The position numbers and the translations under genes were made by a program. Shown here one piece after another: positions 825 to 63,524 of a DNA stretch of 64,000 nucleotides. The stretch spans positions 27,708,646 to 27,772,645 of the forward strand of contig NC_069002.1 of NCBI RefSeq assembly GCF_001194135.2, given 5' to 3'. The notes below the pieces were generated by a model. The model saw only the letters and a list, made by a program, of their open reading frames with translations, did no database searches and was not told where the DNA came from. This DNA comes from Octopus bimaculoides. Its lineage: Eukaryota. Every line of letters begins with the position of its first letter. The first letter of the stretch is position 1.

Positions 825-1980
825 CATTTTTTTTTGCTTTCCATGAATTTTTCATGGGTTCAGCTAGTTAATCGTTAATTGCTGAAGAAGTATTTATCAA
901 TCAATAATTTTACTAATAAGATGAATGGCTGATTCAGCCATGCAGACCTATGTTTGGTGTTGGATTTAGCTGTGCCTACCTCCACCAGCAAGCAGAGATG
1001 CTTCACTGTTGCCCTCTATATGCTATATATCTGTTCTAATATTATTTCAACTTATTTCCTGATTCTTGTAAATTTGTTTACATTTCCCCTTTAGGACAAA
1101 TCTCAGTGAATGCACAAATGATGTCTGGCAAGCATCAGTAAATAACTGGTATGCTGACATCCATAAACAAAGGCTTGAGCTCTTGTTAGACTCATCACTC
1201 CAGTGGAATAGCTTTGAGTGAGGAGACACAATAAAGTCAAAAGACTGCAGTATCTTAAAGTACCCTTGCACCTGTGAAGCAGTGAATCACATGTATTGTG
1301 AAGCAGTGAATCACATGTATTATGAACACACATTGTCTAAAAGGAGGTGTTCTCTAATGATGAAAAACAATAGCCATAAGATATTCATGTCTAAATCTGC
1401 CAGGACTTATTAAGAATTGAAATGTTATTGTTTGGATTCTTGCTGATCTGCATGCTCCCAATAAATTGCTCTTTCTCTCATATATGTATAACATACTAAA
1501 CCATTAAGTATTATGTAAAATTATCATAACCCTTTAGTGTTTAAACCAGCCACATCTGGCCCAAATACTCTATATGTTTTATATTCAAACCAGCCATTTC
1601 TAGCCTCTCATACCTAACCTACATTGACAGTGTAAAAATAAACAATCACATCACTGAAACGTCAAAGTTATAAGATAATGCATGATTAATGCAAAACAAT
1701 TTGTGTGAAAAAGCATTGCATTTAATAAAGTAATCTGAACAGTATAGGGTTAAAACAGCGAGCTGGCAGAATCGTTAGCACGCCAGGCGAAATATCACTA
1801 AACATTTCACCCAGCGCTACATTCTGAGTTCAAATTCCACTGAGGTTGACTTTGCCTTTCATTCTTTCAGGGTCAACAAAATAAGTACCAGGTATGCACT
1901 GGGATCGATGTAACTGATTATTTCCTTCTCTCAAAATTTCAGGCCTTGTGCCTATAGCAGAAAAGATTATGTGAAATTAC

Positions 1981-2073
1981 CTTGATGATAAAATTTCCTG
2001 AAGCAAGTGATGGGTGCAAAACCAAATGATCAGCAACAGAGCCATTGCTGGTGAATGTAAGAACATGGCAATC
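1981..2073 (-). CDS. UBR4: UBR4 exon ([31 protein letters not shown])
   Basis: ctatag| and |gtaatt; 93 nt, phase 0 to 0; matches [31 protein letters not shown]. Confidence 0.98.
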
Positions 2074-2227: not shown

Positions 2228-5200
2228 NNNNNNNNNNNNNNNNNNNNNNNNNNNNNNNNNNNNNNNNNNNNNNNNNNNNNNNNNNNNNNNNNNNNNNNNN
2301 NNNNNNNNNNNNNNNNNNNNNNNNNNNNNNNNNNNNNNNNNNNNNNNNNNNNNNNNNNNNNNNNNNNNNNNNNNNNNNNNNNNNNNNNNNNNNNNNNNNN
2401 NNNNNNNNNNNNNNNNNNNNNNNNNNNNNNNNNNNNNNNNNNNNNNNNNNNNNNNNNNNNNNNNNNNNNNNNNNNNNNNNNNNNNNNNNNNNNNNNNNNN
2501 NNNNNNNNNNNNNNNNNNNNNNNNNNNNNNNNNNNNNNNNNNNNNNNNNNNNNNNNNNNNNNNNNNNNNNNNNNNNNNNNNNNNNNNNNNNNNNNNNNNN
2601 NNNNNNNNNNNNNNNNNNNNNNNNNNNNNNNNNNNNNNNNNNNNNNNNNNNNNNNNNNNNNNNNNNNNNNNNNNNNNNNNNNNNNNNNNNNNNNNNNNNN
2701 NNNNNNNNNNNNNNNNNNNNNNNNNNNNNNNNNNNNNNNNNNNNNNNNNNNNNNNNNNNNNNNNNNNNNNNNNNNNNNNNNNNNNNNNNNNNNNNNNNNN
2801 NNNNNNNNNNNNNNNNNNNNNNNNNNNNNNNNNNNNNNNNNNNNNNNNNNNNNNNNNNNNNNNNNNNNNNNNNNNNNNNNNNNNNNNNNNNNNNNNNNNN
2901 NNNNNNNNNNNNNNNNNNNNNNNNNNNNNNNNNNNNNNNNNNNNNNNNNNNNNNNNNNNNNNNNNNNNNNNNNNNNNNNNNNNNNNNNNNNNNNNNNNNN
3001 NNNNNNNNNNNNNNNNNNNNNNNNNNNNNNNNNNNNNNNNNNNNNNNNNNNNNNNNNNNNNNNNNNNNNNNNNTAGCAAATCACAGAATATAATAAAAGA
3101 ACTTAATAAAGATTATCAAGACGAAATGAAATAAAAAGAGGAAATTTAAGATTTAAAAAAAAAAAAAAAAAAAGAATTAAAAATTTTTTTTTTAAATGAA
3201 ACTTAAAGCATATTCATATTGAAATCTATGAAGCACATGATTGAGATGAGCAGATTGTAGGCTGCAAACACCTCCAGTGGAATTATAACATGCACTCAAC
3301 AAATGGCAACTGAGATGCCATTCCAGAAAAACTTGGCATTAGTGATAATGCAGAAAGCATGACTGCTACAATCGACAAACGTCAACACAAATCTGTAATG
3401 AACAGAGCACAATTGGCAATACAAAATAGCTAGCAATGACCAGAAGTCGCTTAACCCAATAGACAATAAAATAAAATACTAAAAGGTTTGGGGAGGGGGT
3501 GTAAATCTAGATTTTGAACCACTTTAAAAATGTAATTAAAAAATTTTTTTTTTATCAGACTTATAAAAATATGGTTTAAATCATTAGCCTAATTTAAGAT
3601 ATTGCTTAATCAATGAGTCTGATTTCTTTTGTTTTGTATTTTACAGGAATGGTTAAGGAAAAAAAAAGAAGTTTTTAATTTCTGACTATGTGTGTAATTC
3701 TTCTTGAGCTCAGCAGTTCACAAAATGACAAGTACTAGCCCCCCCCCCCATACTACCCCCCATACATACACAGATACACAAAATCTGTAAAGATTTTTGT
3801 TCTCTGCCTCCATAATAATAATAAGCTTCATCATCATCACTGTTTTTTAACATCCACTTTTCCATGCTTGCATGGGTCAGATGGAATTAAGGCAGATTTT
3901 CTATAGCTTGATGCTCTTCCTTTCACTAACCCTCACCTGTTTTCAAACAAGTTCATATTTCCTCATTGCTAGACAAGTTTTTCACAGAAGTCGAGAAACA
4001 AACATAGCTTGTATGATGATGATGATGATGATGATGTACATGTCCACCCATCACATAATGTCGAGGTAAGAGCAAACACAAAAGATCTTTGTTTTCTTCC
4101 AACCACAAATTTCCATTTGAAAATTTTCAGAAAATATACTTTTGATACAGTTTTGCATGCTAATGACGAGCATCACATTCATTATCTTGGAGAATTTATA
4201 ATAAAGAAGATAGAAGCATTTAAAATTGTGTTTTAAGCCAAAATGAATGCGATATTCGTCATCAGCATGCAAAACTACATCTGTGTAGAAAATATTTAGA
4301 AATAATCCATTGAGAATTGCAAAAAAAAATCTTCAGTTGGTTGGAAGAAAACGAAAAAGATCCAACATAAACACACATATACAACAGGTTTCCTTGAGTT
4401 TTCATCTATCAAATTAGCTTCCATGGCCTTGGTCGGCCCAAAGCCATAACAGAAGACACTTGTCCAAGGTGATGCGCAGTGGAACCGAACCCAAAACCAC
4501 ATTTAAGAAGCTTGCTTCAGAACAACATGGTTTTTAGTTCGGTACCATTGTGGAGGAACTTAGGCAAGGTCTTCTACTATAATCCGAGGACAACCAAAGC
4601 CTTGTGAAAGGATCTCGTACATGGAAATCGAAAGAAGTCCATCATTATATATATATATATATATATATATNNNNNNNNNNNNNNNNNNNNNNNNNNNNNN
4701 NNNNNNNNNNNNNNNNNNNNNNNNNNNNNNNNNNNNNNNNNNNNNNNNNNNNNNNNNNNNNNNNNNNNNNNNNNNNNNNNNNNNNNNNNNNNNNNNNNNN
4801 NNNNNNNNNNNNNNNNNNNNNNNNNNNNNNNNNNNATATATATGCGCATGTGTGTGTTCATATTTATGTTCATGTCTCCTTACCTGGCCATCATGCCAAA
4901 TAATTGCTTCACCACAGTAGTGGTTTCTATTCGGAATAGAAACCCACATGCACTTTTCAAATTGGTAAAACAACAATTTCTTTAATCAAAGACCTGTAAT
5001 TCATAATAAACCAAACTTTCACAGATTCACATCAGAGTTACTACTAGCTAATCACTGCAAGCCAAACTGAACCAATACACTGGTTCTCCTCTCGCACACA
5101 CCATGCCTATTTCTCTCACTTCCAACCAACCAAACTCTGGTTAAATAACCACTTCACTATTCCTACCTAGAAATGCAGTCCTCTGGAACTCCATGCTCAG

Positions 5201-9800: not shown

Positions 9801-12800
9801 ACACTCCTTTACAACTACCATGTGATGTCAGAACAAGGAAATCCACTCACACATATATGACAGGTTGTTTCCACTGAAGAGGCTGCATTTGACTCAAGAG
9901 TTATAGTAGAAGACACCTGCCTAAAGTGCCACATGGTGGGACTGAATCCAGAACCATGTGGTTCAGTGATAAATTTCTAAACCACACACTCACATCTGTG
10001 CCTCCTATATATCATACTAGCAGAGGCACCCGGCGTTGCTCGGGAATGAAATTTTTGCTTATATACTTGAAGAAAAAAAGGCAAAATATGCTGTATAGAA
10101 ATTTGAGGACATTCTGTAGATGGACTCTCAGATGTATGATGGCTGGGCGCCTCTCATGAATGGGGAAAATTGAAGATGTGCCAAAAAGCCTCATTGGTAC
10201 TTGGAAACTTTTACGAAAATTAAAATGGGGATCGTTGCCAGTGCCCATGGGCTGGCTCGTGTGCGGGNNNNNNNNNNNNNNNNNNNNNNNNNNNNNNNNN
10301 NNNNNNNNNNNNNNNNNNNNNNNNNNNNNNNNNNNNNNNNNNNNNNNNNNNNNNNNNNNNNNNNNNNNNNNNNNNNNNNNNNNNNNNNNNNNNNNNNNNN
10401 NNNNNNNNNNNNNNNNNNNNNNNNNNNNNNNNNNNNNNNNNNNNNNNNNNNNNNNNNNNNNNNNNNNNNNNNNNNNNNNNNNNNNNNNNNNNNNNNNNNN
10501 NNNNNNNNNNNNNNNNNNNNNNNNNNNNNNNNNNNNNNNNNNNNNNNNNNNNNNNNNNNNNNNNNNNNNNNNNNNNNNNNNNNNNNNNNNNNNNNNNNNN
10601 NNNNNNNNNNNNNNNNNNNNNNNNNNNNNNNNNNNNNNNNNNNNNNNNNNNNNNNNNNNNNNNNNNNNNNNNNNNNNNNNNNNNNNNNNNNNNNNNNNNN
10701 NNNNNNNNNNNNNNNNNNNNNNNNNNNNNNNNNNNNNNNNNNNNNNNNNNNNNNNNNNNNNNNNNNNNNNNNNNNNNNNNNNNNNNNNNNNNNNNNNNNN
10801 NNNNNNNNNNNNNNNNNNNNNNNNNNNNNNNNNNNNNNNNNNNNNNNNNNNNNNNNNNNNNNNNNNNNNNNNNNNNNNNNNNNNNNNNNNNNNNNNNNNN
10901 NNNNNNNNNNNNNNNNNNNNNNNNNNNNNNNNNNNNNNNNNNNNNNNNNNNNNNNNNNNNNNNNNNNNNNNNNNNNNNNNNNNNNNNNNNNNAGACAGAG
11001 TGAGAGAGCGGTGTGTATGTAGTATTTACTCTCTCTCTCTCTCATACACACTCACACACACACTCACACACAAAATAGAAAGTGAAGCTTTTTGCGGTTT
11101 GTTACGTCAATACCGGAAGTTGACATTGAGGAACCTTTTTAAAGAAGTGAATCTTAAATATAAAGCAATATTATTTCATTTTAATTTAAAAAAAATCAAA
11201 TGAAGAGCCTAAGATTTATCCGAGGTCAAATTATTCATGCATTACAAGTATGGAAGCATTTGGTGAAGTCGATTTCACGTGAAAAGCGATTACACACACA
11301 TCTCTGTTTTATATATAGTATAGATATAACAATTTATATTGGGTCATCCCATAAATAATGCGGTTTTATACAATTGCATGAACTAAAAGTCGGAGGGGGA
11401 CAGGATAAACTACCTGCATCAACTTGCTATAAAAGCAAGGAGTAATTTTACCATGTTCTTATTCTTAGTGCAAGTTTTGAAGAGTGCAGTTTGATTTTAA
11501 CAGTTATTTTTTCAAAGCTGTAATGGAAATGACAAAGGAGCATATTCGGCATATTTTGCTTTATGAGTTCAATAAAGGCATCAATGCAACGCAAAGTGCA
11601 AGGAATATTAATGCAGTATATGGGGTTCCAGAAATTCCGAGACAGAAACTACAGCCTAGAAGGCCAGCCTCATCCTGGAAGATCTGTAGAGCTCAACAAG
11701 GAAGTCCTGCAAACCCTGGGGGAACAAAATCCCATCGTAGCTGTTGAGGAACTAACAGACAAGCTTGGATTTGGTCATTCAACCATTCATTGACACCTGC
11801 ATGCCATTGGAAAAGTCAGCAAATTGGGTTAATGGGTTCCTCACAAACTTTCTGAGTCTAATCATGCACAGAGAGTGAATGTGTGCTCTTCTTTGCTGTC
11901 ACGTGTCACGAATGAACCTTTTTTGGACTGAATAGTGACAGGTGATGAGAAATGGGTTCTCTATAAAAATATCAGACGTCAAAGAGAGTGGGTAGGGAAA
12001 GGAGAAACACTGGCACACCAGGCTAAAGAAGATCTTCACCCATGTAAGGTGGTGTTATCTGTTTGGTGGGATATGAAAGGTTTAGTCCACTTTGAACTTT
12101 TAAATCCAAGCCAAACGATAACAACGGAGATCTAGTGCAAGCAACTTGAGTGGCTTAAGTCAGTGCTAGAAGAAAAACAGCCATCATTGGTTTCAAGATG
12201 AAAGGTGTTCTTCCATCAGGATAATGCTCGGCCACATACAGCGAGGATGACATTTCAAATGCCAGAGTAGTTTGAATGGTAAACGATGCCCACCCACCAT
12301 ATTTGCCAGACACTGCCCCATCTGATTAGCATTTATTCCACAGTCTTCAAAATCACTTGGAAGGAAAAAAATATGAATTCTGTAGACGAGGTCAGAACAG
12401 TACGAGAGGAGTATTTTTCACCATGGACAAGTGAATTTTGGAAGAGGGGCCCTGCAAATCTACCAGACAGATGGAAGAGCATTGTGGAAAATGAAGGGGA
12501 GTATATTTTAGATTAAAAAAGAACTTATTTTAATTTTGAAAAATAAAAGTAAAAAAAACACATTATTTATGGGATGACCCAATACATAACACAAATAATG
12601 AAAAATGCATACGTTATTTAATGCTATTGCTTTTTTTTTTTTTCTTTCATTATCATTTAACATCCATTTTTCCAAGTTTACATGAGTCTGAGGGAATTTG
12701 TTGAAGCAGATTTTCTATGGCTGGATGTCCTTTCTGTAGCCAACCCTCACTTCCTATTATTTCCAAGCAAGATAATATTTCCCTATGACCAGACATGTTT

Positions 12801-13553: not shown

Positions 13554-16500
13554 GAGGAGGAGGAGGACACACAAGGTGAAAAACCCATAAAATCTATTAT
13601 AAACTGCAAACAAACTAAAAATGAAAGCCTCTAATTTCAATTAAATATAAGCATGAAATATAAGCAATACATTTGAATAATTTTCTTACGAACAATAACA
13701 TAAATGATTATGAAAAAATGTAACCAAAGTAATTTACATGCCTATGTCTAAAATAATCTATACTGATAAAACTTCAGCTTTCCATGCTCTTGCAATAGAA
13801 CACCTTATGCACATCGTCAGTACACAAAACAGGTAAATTAGCACAAAAGATCTGCATCAACATGTTAATCCTACAAAATATTAACTACTAAAAAAAGGAG
13901 ACAAAAGCAATTTTTAACTGCAACACGCAACACTTCCAGATGTACATAAAATAATGATCTATATAAAAACCAAAACAACACACACACACACATGGATACA
14001 CGCACGCACGACATCTCAAATTTTGACATCTCCACCTTCTGGCTCTGAAATATGAACATCTAAGTAAAAATGTTCTTAGACTCCTGAATATCTGTCTTAA
14101 GTATATTCAAACTATATTCAATTCATACTTTTAATCTTGATCCATTAAGCAAGAAATGAAGGCAAGTTTTGCAGAAATTAAAGCTTGTTAAGATTAATTG
14201 AAATATCAACTAGTTTCCTATTTTGCTTTCACGCTGTCTTAATCTATATGTCCTAAGTTGTTCACATGCATACTTTTCCACGCACACATTCTTGCATTAA
14301 GACCGAATTAAAAGGGTTTCAATGTTATTGGCTACCATCTGAAGGTAAATGCAACTATATCTACAAAAGTCAAAGTTATTAGTTCAAACAACTGCATTTT
14401 CTGCAAAAAAAAAACAAAAACAAAAAAAAAACTATAAAAATGTACAAAATTTAGTTAAATATTGTAGCAGAGTCTATACTTTTAATATCACCCATTAACC
14501 ATCCAGAAGCAAAAGTTGTTCCCATTATACATACATNNNNNNNNNNNNNNNNNNNNNNNNNNNTATATATATATATATATTGTACTCTAGTGTGAGAGAG
14601 AATACGCTAAGTGTTATATTACTTACTCAGCCTAAATCAATTTAAGAAGGATTCTTAATTGTGTGTGTGTGTGTGTGTGTAAAAGTAAATAGCCTGCAAG
14701 GGATGTTTAAAAGTTAAAGAAAGCCTAGAAACAATTATTTGAAAATAGTGGGCACAAAATTTTGACCAAGAAATAACAGATCAATATTTTGTGCTGAGGC
14801 ACATATACACTGGAGAGATGCAGCAGTTTAAATAAGGATTGGCTACCAAATTTAATTATAGAAAAATTTTCAATTTGTATGAAAAAGTAGTTGGATTAAA
14901 TTTTCCATCCATAAGCCAACTTTAATCTTATAATGCATCCACCCGCTTCCAAATTGCAAAGTGCCAACCCTATTGATAGCAAAAGTTCTTCACAGCGTTT
15001 TAGCTGACAAGGAATCTGAGGAAGAGAAAATGTGGGCTAGAGAGAGATAACTTACCATCATGTTGATCACCTAGGAAAACAAAGACATAATCAAACAGAT
15101 TTTATTAGTAAAGATGAAATGCCTACCCTAGTGAAAGGTTTTAAAAAAAGTATTGTTTTGTCAAGGTTTTGAAGTGGGAACATTGAAGTTCAGCCAACTA
15201 AATGAGTAGTGTGTAAAAACAATCTAATGAAATAAGTCCTATCTTGATTTTATTATTATTATTATTATTATTATCATTATTATTATTATTATAACTCAGA
15301 ATTTATTTTTTTTAATCTATTAAAATGAACTTATACATAGGTGCTTTTAATTATATGAGCCAATTATAGTTCGTGGTGGAGTTCATGTATTTTTTACCTT
15401 GAACCAAGAATTTAAGAAACCAAATTCTTGAACTAACCTTTTAAATACTTAACTCACCGACAACCATCTCTCTCCACAACTCCCTTTCCCTGATTCCATT
15501 TCAGGTTTACTTATATTGAGGAATAAGGAGGGAGAGAGAGAGAGAGAGAAAGAGAAAAGAGGGGAGAGAGAACAATCCGTGGCCCTTGTAGGCCTTCTTG
15601 TTTATTTAGCTTTCCACTCTCATATTTTGGGGCTTTTCAAGACAATACACTGGACATCAACCCATCTGAAGCTGGTACAGGTTTCCAGCCAGTTGGAATG
15701 AATCTAAAGAAGTATTGTTGCATCTCGTCTCGCACATTTATTCAATCAGGATTTGAAATGATTACTTTGTACTTATCAGCTCTCCAACAATACTTTTATT
15801 TCGTTGTCTTCACTCACCCCACCCCACCATTTTTAATTACTCCTAAATGATTTTATTTCTCCATATTGCTGATTCATGTACAGTCTTGTATACTTACTTA
15901 GTGAGTCAGTCAACACTCTCTTGGCAAGAATAAACAAAGGACTGGTTTTGCTGATGAGGTCAGAACATGACCAAAACATGCTTGGAATTATCTCCAGTAC
16001 TTGATTAACTGATAAATACTAACAGCGATTGGCCAATATATTTTTTTTCCATCACAGAATATTTCAAGACTGATATTCATCATCTATTTTTACTGTTTAA
16101 CTGCCTCTACATTCTTACATCCTAATCAATGTTTTTATCACCATAACTCTTGCTCCCCTCTTGCAATTTTCCTGTCACTGCTACTTCTTCCATTCACCCC
16201 CTCAACCACACATTACAGAGGCGTGTGACCTCTCTAAACCTTATGGGGCACAAGGTGAACCTCACAAGTATTGACAGCACAATAAATCCAACCAGAACAT
16301 TCAGTAAATGCTCAGCAAGACAAGGACTCAAGACGGTCTCGGTGTTGTTGAGGGCATGACAACACTTTTGGAACCAGTACCACAATAAAGTGCTCTCAGT
16401 ACACACTGTAAAGCGGTTGGTGATACAAAAAGTATCAAGCCATAGCAAACAAAATCATAAAATGAAATGCATAAATGAGATATGGTCCTCTAACCTGTCT

Positions 16501-19500
16501 AACAGAACAGTAACTCCAAATAAGAACCGGTTCAAAACAAGATGACCCATCTAACCCATACCAGCATGGAAAAGCAGATGTAAAACAAGGATTTATGTTT
16601 AGTCAAATCAGTCTTTTTAATGCTCCCTGCATTAACTTACCTATTATTGGAGCAGCTTTGTGAAGATGTCTCAGTAATTTTTCTTGCAGCTACATTGATC
16701 ATTATTAATCGTTAGAATTAATAATAATGAATGTAGCTGCAAAGTATTATACTTGGACCTGTTTGTTTATCCCAACTCTTTGGCTGTAATCTATTTAAAA
16801 CCTATTTTCTTACATTCATTCGTATCCAACTTCAACAAAACTATCTCTTGCAAACAGAATTAAAGACCTTCAGTTTCCACCAAAGCAGTTCGTATCTATT
16901 TGACTTGGACAGCTAACACCAAAGGGAAGACATCTAATATGCAGAAGTAGAAATAATCCCTTGTCACTGTTGAAATGGTTTGTGCACCTACTAATCAACT
17001 TCATGTTTAGTAGAATGTTAAAAGAATGCTATGGTTATTTAGTTTGCCATTATTTATATAGAACAAAATTATTTATACAAAGGGATATCAGGCTCTATCG
17101 TCACTTTGAGACTCAAGAACAATGAGTCTTCTGACACCATTGCTCTTCACATTGAAAATCTTAGTTAATTCATTTATGATGACTGCTAATACTATCATTT
17201 CAAAACAGCCCTTATATCTTCAAAAGCAGTTAACAAAAGTAATTCCAGTATTGAAATAATTTTGTGTAATTAAAAAAAAAAGTTTTAAAAAAAGAGTAAA
17301 TTTGGGCAGTAATTTTATGGCCTTATCTTGTGTAACATATATGAACTGTTGTTTATTTGAGTTCTGATAGCAATTACAAGTTTTTAAACTAACTGTTTAT
17401 ATTCTGCATTTCATATAGTAAACCTATATAAAGAATGATAAGGAAAATATAATTATTCTGAGATAAAGAAAACAACAAAATTTAAGCCTCCAGAAACCCT
17501 GTGTCAGTCAGAGTAGTGGAGTGGCAACTACTGTTTAAAATCTACAAATGGGTCCTTGATAGAGGGTTGGGGGTCACTAACAATAAACATTAAAAAAAAA
17601 AATGTTTGATTCAACAAAATATATCAGGACATGTGGTAAAGACAAGAGATCTCTCACTGGTTTTTAATTTTGTAAAAGAGTGATAACAAAAAAAAAAAAA
17701 AAAAATTCCTAATGATCTTTCAAAATTCACAATTCATAGTAAAAACATTCAACAAACAAAAATGGCAAAAATTATAGTAAAAACATTCAACTGGAATTCT
17801 ATCTCATCAAAATAACCAAATCTTGATACATTAAATAAAAAAAACAAAAACAACAAACCCAGTTACACCACATATACAAGGTGGTATCAAAAGGTTCCAG
17901 AACTAGTTATGGTTCACAAACAATAACTTATTTACCAGAGTTTTAACATCTTCAGCAGCAATACACTGGTCCCAGCATTCCTACCACTTTTGGAATCAGG
18001 CCTGGAAATTGTTTTCCGTAAGCGAGTCAAGGACCTTCAGCGATTTGCTCTGGATCTCAACAATGGCGTTAAAATGGTGACCTTCAAGCTGCATTTTGCA
18101 TCTTGGCGAAGAGATGGAAGACTGCAGGTGTTAAATCTGGCAAATAGGGTGGGTGTGGAAGCGATACCATGTCTTCGGCAAAAAAAAACTCTGTGAAGAA
18201 GCCAATTCTTTGCTCCACAGATCCAGGCGCCTTCGCCAAATGTCCTCCCCTTTAAACGCTTCAAAACGCTGCAGTAGAATTCTTGATAAGCATATACGTG
18301 ATCACAAAAACAAACACAAAATTCACACTTTGCGAAGTAAATACAGTGACATCACTCGGCACACTGCCTCACGAAGGTCACTGCTAGCTCTCTCCCTGGG
18401 CACGCAACTGTTCTCACACAACAGGACTAGTCTGGAAACATTTTGATTTCACCTCGTATTTTATCCTCTCATCATATAAACTCATTAATGAACTTTTCCC
18501 AAAATAATCTAAGGAACACATTCAACTTCTTCATTTCTGTAATTTCAATAATTCATGATGCATTAACTAATGACTAACAACCTACACTTGTTTAGATCAT
18601 CTTTTCACTCTATTCACACACACACACACACACACAAACAAACAACAACAACTAAAAATCACATGAGACATTTAATTCTTGATATCAACCTGGTTTTATG
18701 ATACAAACTTTGTTTTAAAGCCATCTAAATTAAAACCCTCCATCAAAAGTTCGTTAATTTATGCTCCAAACACCAGCTTCATAATGACAGTTATTTTATT
18801 AAGTTCTCCTCATTATATTCGAAATTAATTCAAATAAAAGCAGTGCATTTAAACAGAAATATTGTAACAAAAGAGTCAACTCTTTTNNNNNNNNNNCAAA
18901 AGTTCGTTAATTTATGCTCCAAACACCAGCTTCATAATGACAGTTATTTTATTAAGTTCTCCTCATTATATTCGAAATTAATTCAAATAAAAGCAGTGCA
19001 TTTTTTAAAAAATGTTGTAACAAAAGGGTTGAGTGTAAAACATTTTATAATGAATTTGTTTTTGTTTGAAGTTCCAAAATTCAGAAACTTAAAGCTGATA
19101 TAATTTAGAATTCGCATATATTTCCCAGTGTCAATTTATAATCATCATGATTAACCCTTTAGCATTCATATTATTCTGTTAAATATATCTCATTTATTCA
19201 ATTGTTTTGTCTTAATCATGCATCATCTCATAACTGAGATTTTGACGATGTGATTGTTTCTTTATAGAATGACATTGTAGGGTAGGTGTGAGAGACCAGA
19301 TCTGGCTGGTTTGAACATAAAACAAGTAAAATATTTGGGCCAGATATGGCTGGTTTTAATGCTAAAGGGTTAATTTCAACTATTTCAAAAAGTTAATTAA
19401 TTAAAATTCCATTTCTGATGAAGAAACAATAATGTAAATCCTAACATACAACATGGCAAAGTTTGTCTCCTTTTTAATAGGCTTTAATCAGAATTCCAAT

Positions 19501-22500
19501 TCCATTTTAAAAAAATTAAACAATAATTAGTTTTAATTAAATCATCATCAGCCCCCGGACATTAGCCCTTTTGATGCCAACCCACCTCTGGTTCTGTAGT
19601 ACAAATGTCTTGTTTTCAAAAACACTAGCTTAATGATAACTAAGTTATTTTATAAAAGTCTTTGTTATATTTAAAATTAATTGAAAGAGACACAGAGCAT
19701 CTCAACAGAAAGATGATAACAAAAGGGGTTTAATGACTTGAGCCCTAGGACACACAGGGCTAGACACCCAGTTTTTATGAAGGTCACAACACTCCCTGAA
19801 CGAGACGGGTGTACTCATTAACAGCTGAGTGGGCTGGAGCAATGTGAAATTAAGTGTCTTGCTCATGAACACAACACACTGCCCTTTTAGGGAATCTAAA
19901 TCATGTGGTTGGGAGTGCAACACCCTAACCACTAAGCCATTATCAATTTAAAAAACCAAGTAATTTTCTGCAAAAATATTTAATCTCTCGCAAAACCTTC
20001 CATTTAAGTTGAAATTACTATTTATATGTTGAAGCCAAACATGCTAATTAAAGAAAATGCCTCTTTTGCTTTAAATACATTTTGCTTATGTCAACAAAAT
20101 GTTTTTCTCAATTTTAGGCTGCCTTTAGCTTATCTTTACTATTTTTATTAGCTAAAGTTAATTATTCCATGTTTACCTATTTATTAATATTTCTGATGTT
20201 AGCTAAATAGTTAGCTGACACCACAAACATACTAAAACATTTGCTGACCTTTGCACTATTGGCAACTGCAGCACTTACACAGTATGATTTGTATTATTAC
20301 ATATCTATATGGTTATACTAATTACAAAAGTGGGGCAGATTGACAGTCATTGCAGTGCTGGATAGAAGAATGGTCTGCAGTGTCTGTTACAACTATCTGC
20401 ACTCTGATTCATATCCCACTGAGTTCAACTTTACCTTTCATCCCTTCAGGATGGAAGGAAGGGACAAGTCCATGGCAGTGAACTGGCACAATTGTTAGAA
20501 CATCAAAAGAGGATGCCTTGCAGTATCTGTTCTGGCTTGGTGCAATCTGAGTTCAAATCCTGCTTGGATTAAAAAAAAAAAAATGCAGCTCTTGAAAAAC
20601 CAATGGGAACATAGTGTCCCTGGCTCCATCTGATGAACTGGTATCTCTATTACACCTATCTATTGTATATACCCTGAAGATATTGGGTACTAGATGTTAC
20701 TAACTTCCAAGATCAAGTCAGGCAACATTTCAAATTTCTCCCAATTAGTGGGAAGCCAATTCGTCTAGCTCTCTCCGAATCTCAGTGTTGCACTCGGTTC
20801 TTAGCTCTTTTACAATGATTTCAAAGAGTAGAACAAAATAGAGAGAACTGCAAGCAAGACTTGATGGCCCCTCAAGTGGACTACCCAAGAAGCAATCAAT
20901 CTTACATCAATTTTCCTAGCACCCACAACGATACTCAATACCTGAAACATGGAAAATGTCCATGAGCGTGGCCGTTGCCAGTACCGTGTGACTGGCCCTC
21001 GTGCGGGTGGCACGTAAAAGCACCCACTACACTCTCGGAGTGGTTGGCGTTAGGAAGGGCATCCAGCTGTAGAAACTCTGCCAGATCAGATTGGAGCCTG
21101 GTGCAGCCTTCTGGCTTGCCAGTCCTCAGTCAAATTGTCCAACCCATGCTAGCATGGAAAGCGGACGTTAAACGATGATGATATATATATATATAAACTA
21201 GCTAATTCTAACTGTTACACCAAAAAATACGGCAATGTCTTCACTGAAATCCAACTACCTTGATTGTACCCTGCACTCAATTTCTTATTTGTTTCTCTCC
21301 CACTCGCAAAACATAATATCCTACCACATAATTACACAAAGGTAAAAACGTTTTCATATAAAAAGGAAAAAACTCACTAACATACAACATTAACCAATAA
21401 ATTAAAGGAGAAAAAGGTAATATTCTAGCTTGCAGCCTTGAGTTAACTTGTGCACTGGAAATGTGACAGTTTTAGCAACCAACTTAAAATATATATATAT
21501 TTACTGTTTTCATTAATCACGCTAACAAAGATATGTGATTGTTACACTCAACCTTATTGTATATTGTGAATAAGGATAGCAAAACACTTGCTTACTAAAA
21601 ACCAATCGGTGTCTAATATATTATTGCATTTTAGTGCTATGAAAAAATTAATAGGTAAATGCGTGAGGGTTCGAACAGAAGATGTGTAAGCTCAATTTTC
21701 ACAGATAAAATTAGTAAAGATTCACCATAAAAATTGTAAAATGTAAAGTGTTTTCTCTTTATAAAATACAAAGTAATTTGAATAATATATATTAAAAGTA
21801 TCCAATGCTTACTGTAAGGGTTAACTTTTTTTTACTTGAATCTGCTTGCTTCAAGAGAGCTGATAACTGTAAAATAGTAATTTTTCCTTTCTCATGGCTA
21901 ACAGCCAAATGTTGTCTTTTACCATGGGGAGACGCTAAGACACACATAGCAACACGCCGCACCATATGAGCAGTGATCAGTTGACGGATGGCTTGACCTT
22001 GATCTCCACTATAGTTCATGCGGACATTTTCAAAGGCTCCTTCTTGTGAGCCCAAAGTTACAGTCTACAAAGAGAAAATAAAATTAGATTAAATTAAAAA
22101 AACACCAATCTCACCAATAAACTCTTATCTCATTTTTATTTTTCAAATACACAATTACATTCAAATAACATCAAATATGCTTTTAAGAAACAGATAACAT
22201 ACTTTTAAAGAACATTACCATTATATTACAATTAATACAAAAGTACCGCAAGGCATCCCATCTGAGGCGACAATAATTCCACCAATACAACATCTTGGAT
22301 TAGTGGGTTTTTGTTTTTTTTATTGACCCCTAAACAAATGAAAGACAAGGCTGACCCCAGCATACATATTTACTACTGATATGGAAAAGCAATTGGCTTT
22401 TGACCATGGCTTCCTAAGAACTGTTAAAACATTAGACAAGATATCTTAAGGTATTTGTTCCAGCTCTTTGTGTTATATATTAACTTTACACACATATATA

Positions 22501-62600: not shown

Positions 62601-63524
62601 CACATCTCCGAAGAAAATCTCCAAGCTTAACCCATCACCATCATCATTTTAATGTCCATGCTAGCATGAGTGAAATAGAATTTATAGAAACAGATTTTCT
62701 AATGACCAGATGCCCTGCCAACCCTCACTTCCTATTTCTGTTTCCAAGCAGGATAATATTTCCCCATGGCCAGACATGTCTTTTGCAGAAGACTGGAAAT
62801 AAATGTATCACTTGTACGATGGCAACTCATTTAGAACCATCACAAGATACCATAACAAGTATAGGGATGGATACATAGTCACAACAAGCTTTTTTTAGTT
62901 TTCATCTACCAAATCTACTCAAGGCTTTGAGCAGCTTGAGTCTATAATAGAAGATTCTTGCCCAAGGTGCAAGTGTCTTCTTGATAGAAACCTTAATTAT
63001 TATAACTAGAGGTTGGCAAACAGGATGGGCATTCAACCATAGAAAATAGCCTCGACAGGTCATGTATAACCCATGCCAGCATTGAAAATGCAGATGTAAA
63101 AATGATAATGAATTAATTACAATTAACCTCAATCAGTAAATACTTCATAGTATTTAATTTTGTTTTGTATTAATGGATAAGTGTTTAATTTGATACAGAC
63201 AAATGTTACATCAAAAATTTTCTATTTAACAAACAGAAGAAAGATCGCAAAATATTACTGCGAATGCAACAATCAAAACCAATTTGAAAGAATATCATAG
63301 TAATGAATAACAATCATTATGTATACATCATTAATCACAATCAAATCAAGGTTTAAGTTTCTGATATTTCCATGAGTAAAGTTTAAAGACTAACCTGAAC
63401 CAGATCGGCAGCATTCTTTATCCAGTTCTTTGATAACCAATGCAAGATTAGACATGTGTTCTTCATTCAAAGCCTCCCTGAAAGTAGTAAATTTTGTTAA
63501 TAAAGAATATCCCAAATCAGGTGT

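Follow-up and report, generated by a model that had tools for sequence, protein, structure and literature searches.

The closest described systems are the SRRM3/SRRM4-type neural microexons (eMIC, Srrm234) of vertebrates and insects, which are 3-27 nt long, a multiple of three and frame-preserving, and which combine a strong 5' splice site and conserved flanking intron with insertion into protein-interaction domains. In these exons, the pyrimidine tract and branch point are displaced and the 3' splice site is weak (10.1101/2024.09.17.613571). A UGC motif between the branch point and the AG is present in 74-79% of them and is not strictly required (10.1101/2024.09.17.613571). Two further classes are broadly included or constitutive microexons, with near-consensus splice signals and no obvious reliance on a tissue-specific enhancer, and recursive-splicing (RS) exons, short exon-like units within long introns that start with AG/GT.

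UBR4 (p600; SIFI or UBR4-KCMF1-CALM1 complex) is the scaffold of a megadalton quality-control, stress-silencing ligase, and its beta-propeller is one candidate partner- or substrate-binding module. No described UBR4 microexon was found in the literature. Here we analyse a candidate 15-nt microexon in the UBR4 gene carried by the minus strand of a 64,000-nt stretch of DNA (hereafter, the window), and compare it with the corresponding introns of related species and with the three classes above.

The UBR4 locus and a missing exon

On the minus strand of the window, UBR4 appears as a series of approximately 27 matches to relatives, each about the size of an exon, between positions 63479 and 1981. 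The features relevant to the candidate are collected in Table 1, with slashes marking exon-intron and exon-exon boundaries. The first-pass annotation had placed the candidate between an upstream exon ending in phase 0 and a next exon. The upstream exon was confirmed: exon A closes with ...KKKLTLT/gtaagc, in phase 0. The intended next exon, by contrast, is missing from the readable sequence. In every relative, KKKLTLT is expected to be followed by a conserved 90-nt phase-0 exon starting with RLASAP, RLASAPIPFTVLSI.GNPCNEDFLAVCG.K (..GLK), which we refer to as exon B and which was not found in the readable part of the window. In the closest relative, L011 (see below), exon B is located 765 nt upstream of exon C and approximately 570 nt downstream of a conserved island that also exists in the window (second island in Table 1). 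From this spacing we infer that exon B most likely sits in the 846-N assembly gap. Because exon B runs from phase 0 to phase 0, the 15-mer keeps the frame wherever exon B lies. Gene models built on the present assembly would miss the 30 propeller residues that it encodes.

Table 1. Features of the UBR4 locus around the candidate microexon. Positions refer to the window unless stated otherwise
Feature	Position	Strand	Remarks
UBR-box exon	27181-27020	-	Pfam zf-UBR match; upstream of exon A
UBR4 exon A (...SSKKKLTLT)	21813..22064	-	252 nt, phase-0 end; matches PDB UBR4 chains
Exon A donor ACA/gtaagc	21812-21807	-	
Branch-point-like TACTAAT	15104..15110	-	Putative branch A 34 nt upstream of AG
Conserved island around the microexon	15014..15096	-	Aligns with L011 10745-10837
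Polypyrimidine tract and acceptor ttatgtctttgttttcc/tag	15071..15090	-	14/17 pyrimidines; adjoins AG
Candidate microexon GTGATCAACATGATG (VINMM)	15056..15070	-	15 nt, phase 0 to 0, no stop
Donor gtaagt (ATG/gtaagtt)	15050..15055	-	Unchanged across the window, L011 and L019
Second conserved intronic island	3287..3379	-	Collinear with L011 13822-13911; score 52 versus null 24
Assembly gap, 846 N	2228..3073	.	Most likely conceals the 90-nt exon B
Other N runs	4671-4835, 10268-10992, 14537-14563, 18887-18896		Five N runs between exons A and C in all
UBR4 exon C (DCHVLTF...FIIK)	1981..2073	-	Phase-0 start; next visible exon after exon A
Site in L011, ttctgtag/GTCACCAAACAAATG/gtaagttg	10779-10793 (L011)		15 nt, encodes VTKQM
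Predicted inclusion junction, window			AACCCTTACA/GTGATCAACATGATG
Predicted skipping junction to exon B, window			AACCCTTACA/AGA
Predicted inclusion junctions, L011 and L019			CTCACTTTGACT/GTCACCAAACAAATG/AGATTAGCATCTGCC
Predicted skipping junction, L011 and L019			CTCACTTTGACT/AGATTAGCATCTGCC

The host intron starts in phase 0 after KKKLTLT and is long, with no less than 6.7 kb before and as much as 13 kb after the 15-mer, which itself lies 6.7 kb past exon A on the gene strand; the L011 intron measures 4.3 kb. A decayed mariner/Mos1-type transposon (11484-12516, plus strand) lies antisense inside the UBR4 intron, with ORF fragments matching Pfam HTH_48 (E=9.5e-12) and Transposase_1 (E=1.2e-18). 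Just downstream of exon C, there is a SINE-like element, ggcacaaggcctgaaatttt...ctgccagctcgc (1760-1950, minus strand), which resembles an abundant octopus SINE and would fit the cephalopod origin proposed in the first-pass annotation.

Splice signals of the candidate exon

Rereading of the minus strand yielded cctag/GTGATCAACATGATG/gtaagt, in agreement with the near-consensus splice signals reported in the first-pass annotation, and the claim of a stop-free, symmetric 15-mer (phase 0 to 0) translating to VINMM held as well. The candidate thus falls within the 3-27 nt range of microexons, with AG and GT on the gene strand, a pyrimidine tract and TACTAAT at -34. Its donor, G/GTAAGT, allows 7-base pairing with U1. 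For comparison, exon A has the acceptor ttctctttgtag/ and the donor gtaagc, and exon C the acceptor ctctttgtctatag/ and the donor gtaatt. Judging from these sequences, the core signals of the 15-mer appear to match or exceed those of the neighbouring constitutive exons in strength, which makes recognition by the core machinery plausible. The spliceosome would recognize the exon through TACTAAT, an uninterrupted pyrimidine tract adjoining the YAG, and G/GTAAGT. As the intron is in phase 0 and the exon is 15 nt long, inclusion would insert five residues, VINMM in the window and VTKQM in the two relatives that carry the exon, between ...KKKLTLT and RLASAP...; the phase-0 end of exon A is matched by phase-0 starts of exon C and, in relatives, of exon B, and both versions of the 15-mer are open in this frame. 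Approximately 180 nt upstream of the 15-mer on the gene strand, the window contains an (ATT/AAT)n microsatellite (15247-15290), which is not conserved in L011.

How often such a site would be expected by chance was estimated by scanning the window for YAG preceded by at least 14 pyrimidines in 17 positions and followed by a stop-free stretch of 3-27 nt, in multiples of three, that leads into GTAAGT. The candidate was the sole match on both strands, with 0.03-0.085 sites expected per strand in Markov simulations (orders 1-5) of the gene strand under criteria that were chosen after the fact and fitted to the candidate, so that chance alone could still have produced it. Under looser criteria, 1.6-2.3 sites were expected per strand and 5 were seen, 3 of them within one repeat family. 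The splice signals on their own are therefore unusual but not decisive for a real exon. The flank of the 15-mer has no repeat copy elsewhere in the window.

An interspersed repeat reading ...tctactatagcctcag GyCrACCAAAGmCTT gtgagtgg was found to mimic exons elsewhere in the window: its copies at 47903-47889, 43534-43514 and 31461-31447 (minus strand) imitate open microexons of 15-21 nt flanked by AG and GTGAGT. This repeat is a source of false microexon calls in the host genome.

Conservation of the candidate exon in related species

Relatives of the locus were retrieved through the exon-A ORF; all protein-collection entries found for this lineage in the UBR4 region are prokaryote-style ORF calls on genomic contigs, with no transcript-derived sequence among them. 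The closest relative retrieved, L011, is a 483-kb contig (ENA ERZ21867824) reached through cluster member P0157. Its exon A encodes a protein segment identical to that of the window, with 79% nucleotide identity and a third-position identity of 0.49. In a variable exon (23020-22844), the protein identity is 86%, compared with 50-60% for all other loci. The high identity in the variable exon and the near-saturated third positions therefore indicate that L011 represents the closest lineage, yet a deeply diverged one.

Between exons A and C, L011 contains exactly one microexon-like site, 571 nt after exon A (Table 1). Local alignment of the window and L011 sites with 200 nt on either side gave a score of 39, against 22 +/- 3 for shuffled sequences; the alignment is centred on both 15-mers and spans approximately 27 nt upstream and 38 nt downstream. 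When decoys, that is, sites with comparable splice signals taken from all sequences gathered, were aligned to the window site, none scored above 22 (n=154, mean 15.8, sd 3.0). Furthermore, the two sites are reciprocal best matches when searched against all of L011 and the whole window (runners-up 32 and 31), and they are collinear within an intron of which the remainder barely aligns. The island around the microexon is one of just two islands of other than low complexity shared by the window and L011 in this intron; a third, weak one (window 17853-17824, L011 10540-10572) was set aside as T-rich low complexity. In a default blastn comparison of the intron with its relatives, exons alone were matched, the island becoming visible by anchored or gapped local alignment. 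Plain BLAST of the site against L011 was correspondingly weak (26.5 bits, E 0.03-0.08), with low-complexity intron matches equal in score, so the case for homology is built on anchoring, reciprocity and collinearity.

A third species is represented by L019 and L020 (Logan ERR12408771 and ERR12370320), reached through P0163. L019 carries a 15-mer identical to that of L011, with the same acceptor and donor, at 1063-1077, 560 nt after exon A. Approximately 200 nt around the microexon are 91% identical between L011 and L019, as is exon A, versus 72.5% for the remaining intron, and the longest perfect run between the two introns (42 nt) covers the tract, exon and donor. Given the close relationship of L011 and L019, the three species amount to just one deep comparison. 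Positions invariant across all three are TAG/GT.A.CAA....ATG/GTAAGT, and the tract and acceptor are aligned and largely conserved in both relatives; TACTAAT is not strictly conserved, its aligned place in L011 being occupied by CCAACAT. The check proposed in the first-pass annotation, conservation of the 15-mer and its flanks, thus returned, at the corresponding intron position of L011 and L019, stop-free in-frame 15-nt segments framed by AG and GTAAGT. The exon itself is less conserved than its flanks: 9 of its 15 bases are identical between the window and L011, and 2 of the 5 residues (V...M) are kept. The target of selection may therefore be the splice signals and not the peptide.

The remaining relatives (L001-L010 and L012-L018; 74-78% nucleotide identity) have no homologous microexon in the same intron, which is compact in these loci. 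A look-alike in L018 (3783-3797) was rejected as a chance occurrence, being downstream of exon C and preceded by a poor tract. Scans of JGI metagenome contigs with degenerate patterns returned either no match or one unrelated sequence (L021).

The second conserved island (Table 1) contains an invariant 14-mer, GTTGAGTGCATGTT, that includes UGCAUG, an Rbfox-type motif. This island may or may not regulate the microexon or exon B.

Position in the UBR4 beta-propeller

With exon B of L007 placed between exons A and C, the joined translation matches residues 1862-2004 of human UBR4 without a gap (E=3e-82; PDB 9hxw, 9nwd, 9qws, 9d9z), and the insertion point corresponds to T1942/R1943 in human numbering. 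The beta-propeller of human UBR4 comprises E1849-N2245 (PMC7617804), so that the insertion inside this domain, as first proposed, is borne out; human UBR4 being ungapped at T1942/R1943, the five residues indeed have no human counterpart. In vertebrate-like ORFs (P0010, P0036) and in other ORFs (P0009, P0014, P0015), LTLT-RLASAP is continuous, without an intron, and the microexon therefore cannot exist there.

Between molluscs and human, the block around the insertion point has no gaps, so that an insertion there may not be tolerated, which counts against the exon. Across the window, L011, L012, L015 and L001, exon A is 93-100% identical at the protein level with a third-codon identity of 0.36-0.49, near saturation. 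Purifying selection on this part of the propeller is extreme, and an insertion in its middle is all the more notable. In two AlphaFold fragment models, pLDDT was below 50 around KLTLT/RL. From the WD-repeat pattern, we suspect that the insert is located on the outer (D) strand or in the link to the next blade. The five residues would extend a surface stretch of the propeller, a candidate domain for the binding of partners or substrates. A conserved optional insert of this kind, if true, would be a natural handle on what the propeller binds.

Alternative explanations

The splice signals and the frame are established, as is where in the protein the insert would fall, and three species keep the length of the segment together with its splice sites and flanks. 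On this basis, we consider it probable (roughly 60%) that the 15-mer is a genuine UBR4 exon that arose in one mollusc lineage, that of the window, L011 and L019 species. That it is spliced into mRNA we infer from these features, as would be the case for any statement on alternative or constitutive inclusion, on tissues or on the effect on the propeller. A much less probable alternative is that the conserved segment is an intronic element seen by the splicing machinery and absent from the mature mRNA, either a decoy or pseudo-exon that tunes intron removal or a platform for regulator binding. The better conservation of the flanks and splice signals than of the 15-mer fits this possibility, as does the second island: it has no exon features, so non-exonic constraint occurs in the same intron. 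However, a purely intronic role would not account for three species keeping both consensus sites exactly 15 nt apart with an open frame between them, and no feature of the sequence would block inclusion once the acceptor is used. It is quite unlikely that the site is a chance pseudo-exon of the kind that AT-rich, T-rich introns yield in the form of AG...GTAAGT pairs, with a coincidental resemblance in L011. Such pairs are expected under the loose criteria, exon-like repeat copies and the unrelated L018 look-alike show that mimics exist, and the BLAST E-values are weak, but coincidence is difficult to reconcile with an alignment score far above the decoy maximum, with reciprocal, collinear best hits and with the conservation peak between L011 and L019.

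The long intron of the window, together with the direct succession of AG and GT at the start of the 15-mer in all three species (AG/GTGATC, AG/GTCACC), is also what would be expected of a recursive splice site or RS exon, by which the intron would be removed in two steps and the 15-mer then spliced out. We regard this as very improbable: the regenerated donors, ACA/GTGATC in the window and ACT/GTCACC in L011, both lack the +5 G and the latter also the +3 purine, so that the downstream GTAAGT would outcompete them, leaving the 15-mer included; moreover, the L011 intron is comparatively short.

If the segment is a genuine exon, its use could also be regulated. In the most far-reaching version, a lineage-specific, possibly coleoid-wide microexon would reshape the outer surface of the UBR4/SIFI propeller in tissues such as the nervous system and alter the partners or substrates of the ligase, under the control not of the SRRM3/4 UGC code but, for example, of the distal UGCAUG island. 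This version is unlikely. The candidate is one among many animal microexons, and its importance would be modest unless regulated use is shown.

Comparison with known microexon and splicing classes

Like RS exons, the 15-mer is short, resembles an exon, sits in a long intron and begins at AG/GT, but the 5' splice site regenerated after its acceptor (GTGATC or GTCACC) would be weak or unusable.

Like the SRRM3/4-type microexons, the candidate has a length within 3-27 nt that is divisible by three, preserves the frame, has a strong 5' splice site, is flanked by conserved intron sequence and would be inserted into a protein-interaction domain. It differs at the 3' splice site: instead of a displaced tract and branch point, it has in all three species a tract that continues to the YAG. 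Neither the window nor L011 nor L019 has a UGC between the branch point and the AG: in the window, the 50 nt upstream of the AG contain no TGC, and the nearest copies in the two relatives (-53 in L011, -55 in L019) fall before the likely branch point. The neural specificity suggested in the first-pass annotation is thus an analogy that the cis layout does not support. If true, the exon would be a further case, in a non-model lineage, of microexon evolution that does without the customary SRRM3/4 signature.

Broadly included or constitutive microexons offer the third comparison. The 15-mer departs from these in being confined to one lineage, the distant relatives keeping the intron without it. 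It is like them in its near-consensus branch point, tract, YAG and GTAAGT and in showing no obvious reliance on a tissue-specific enhancer.
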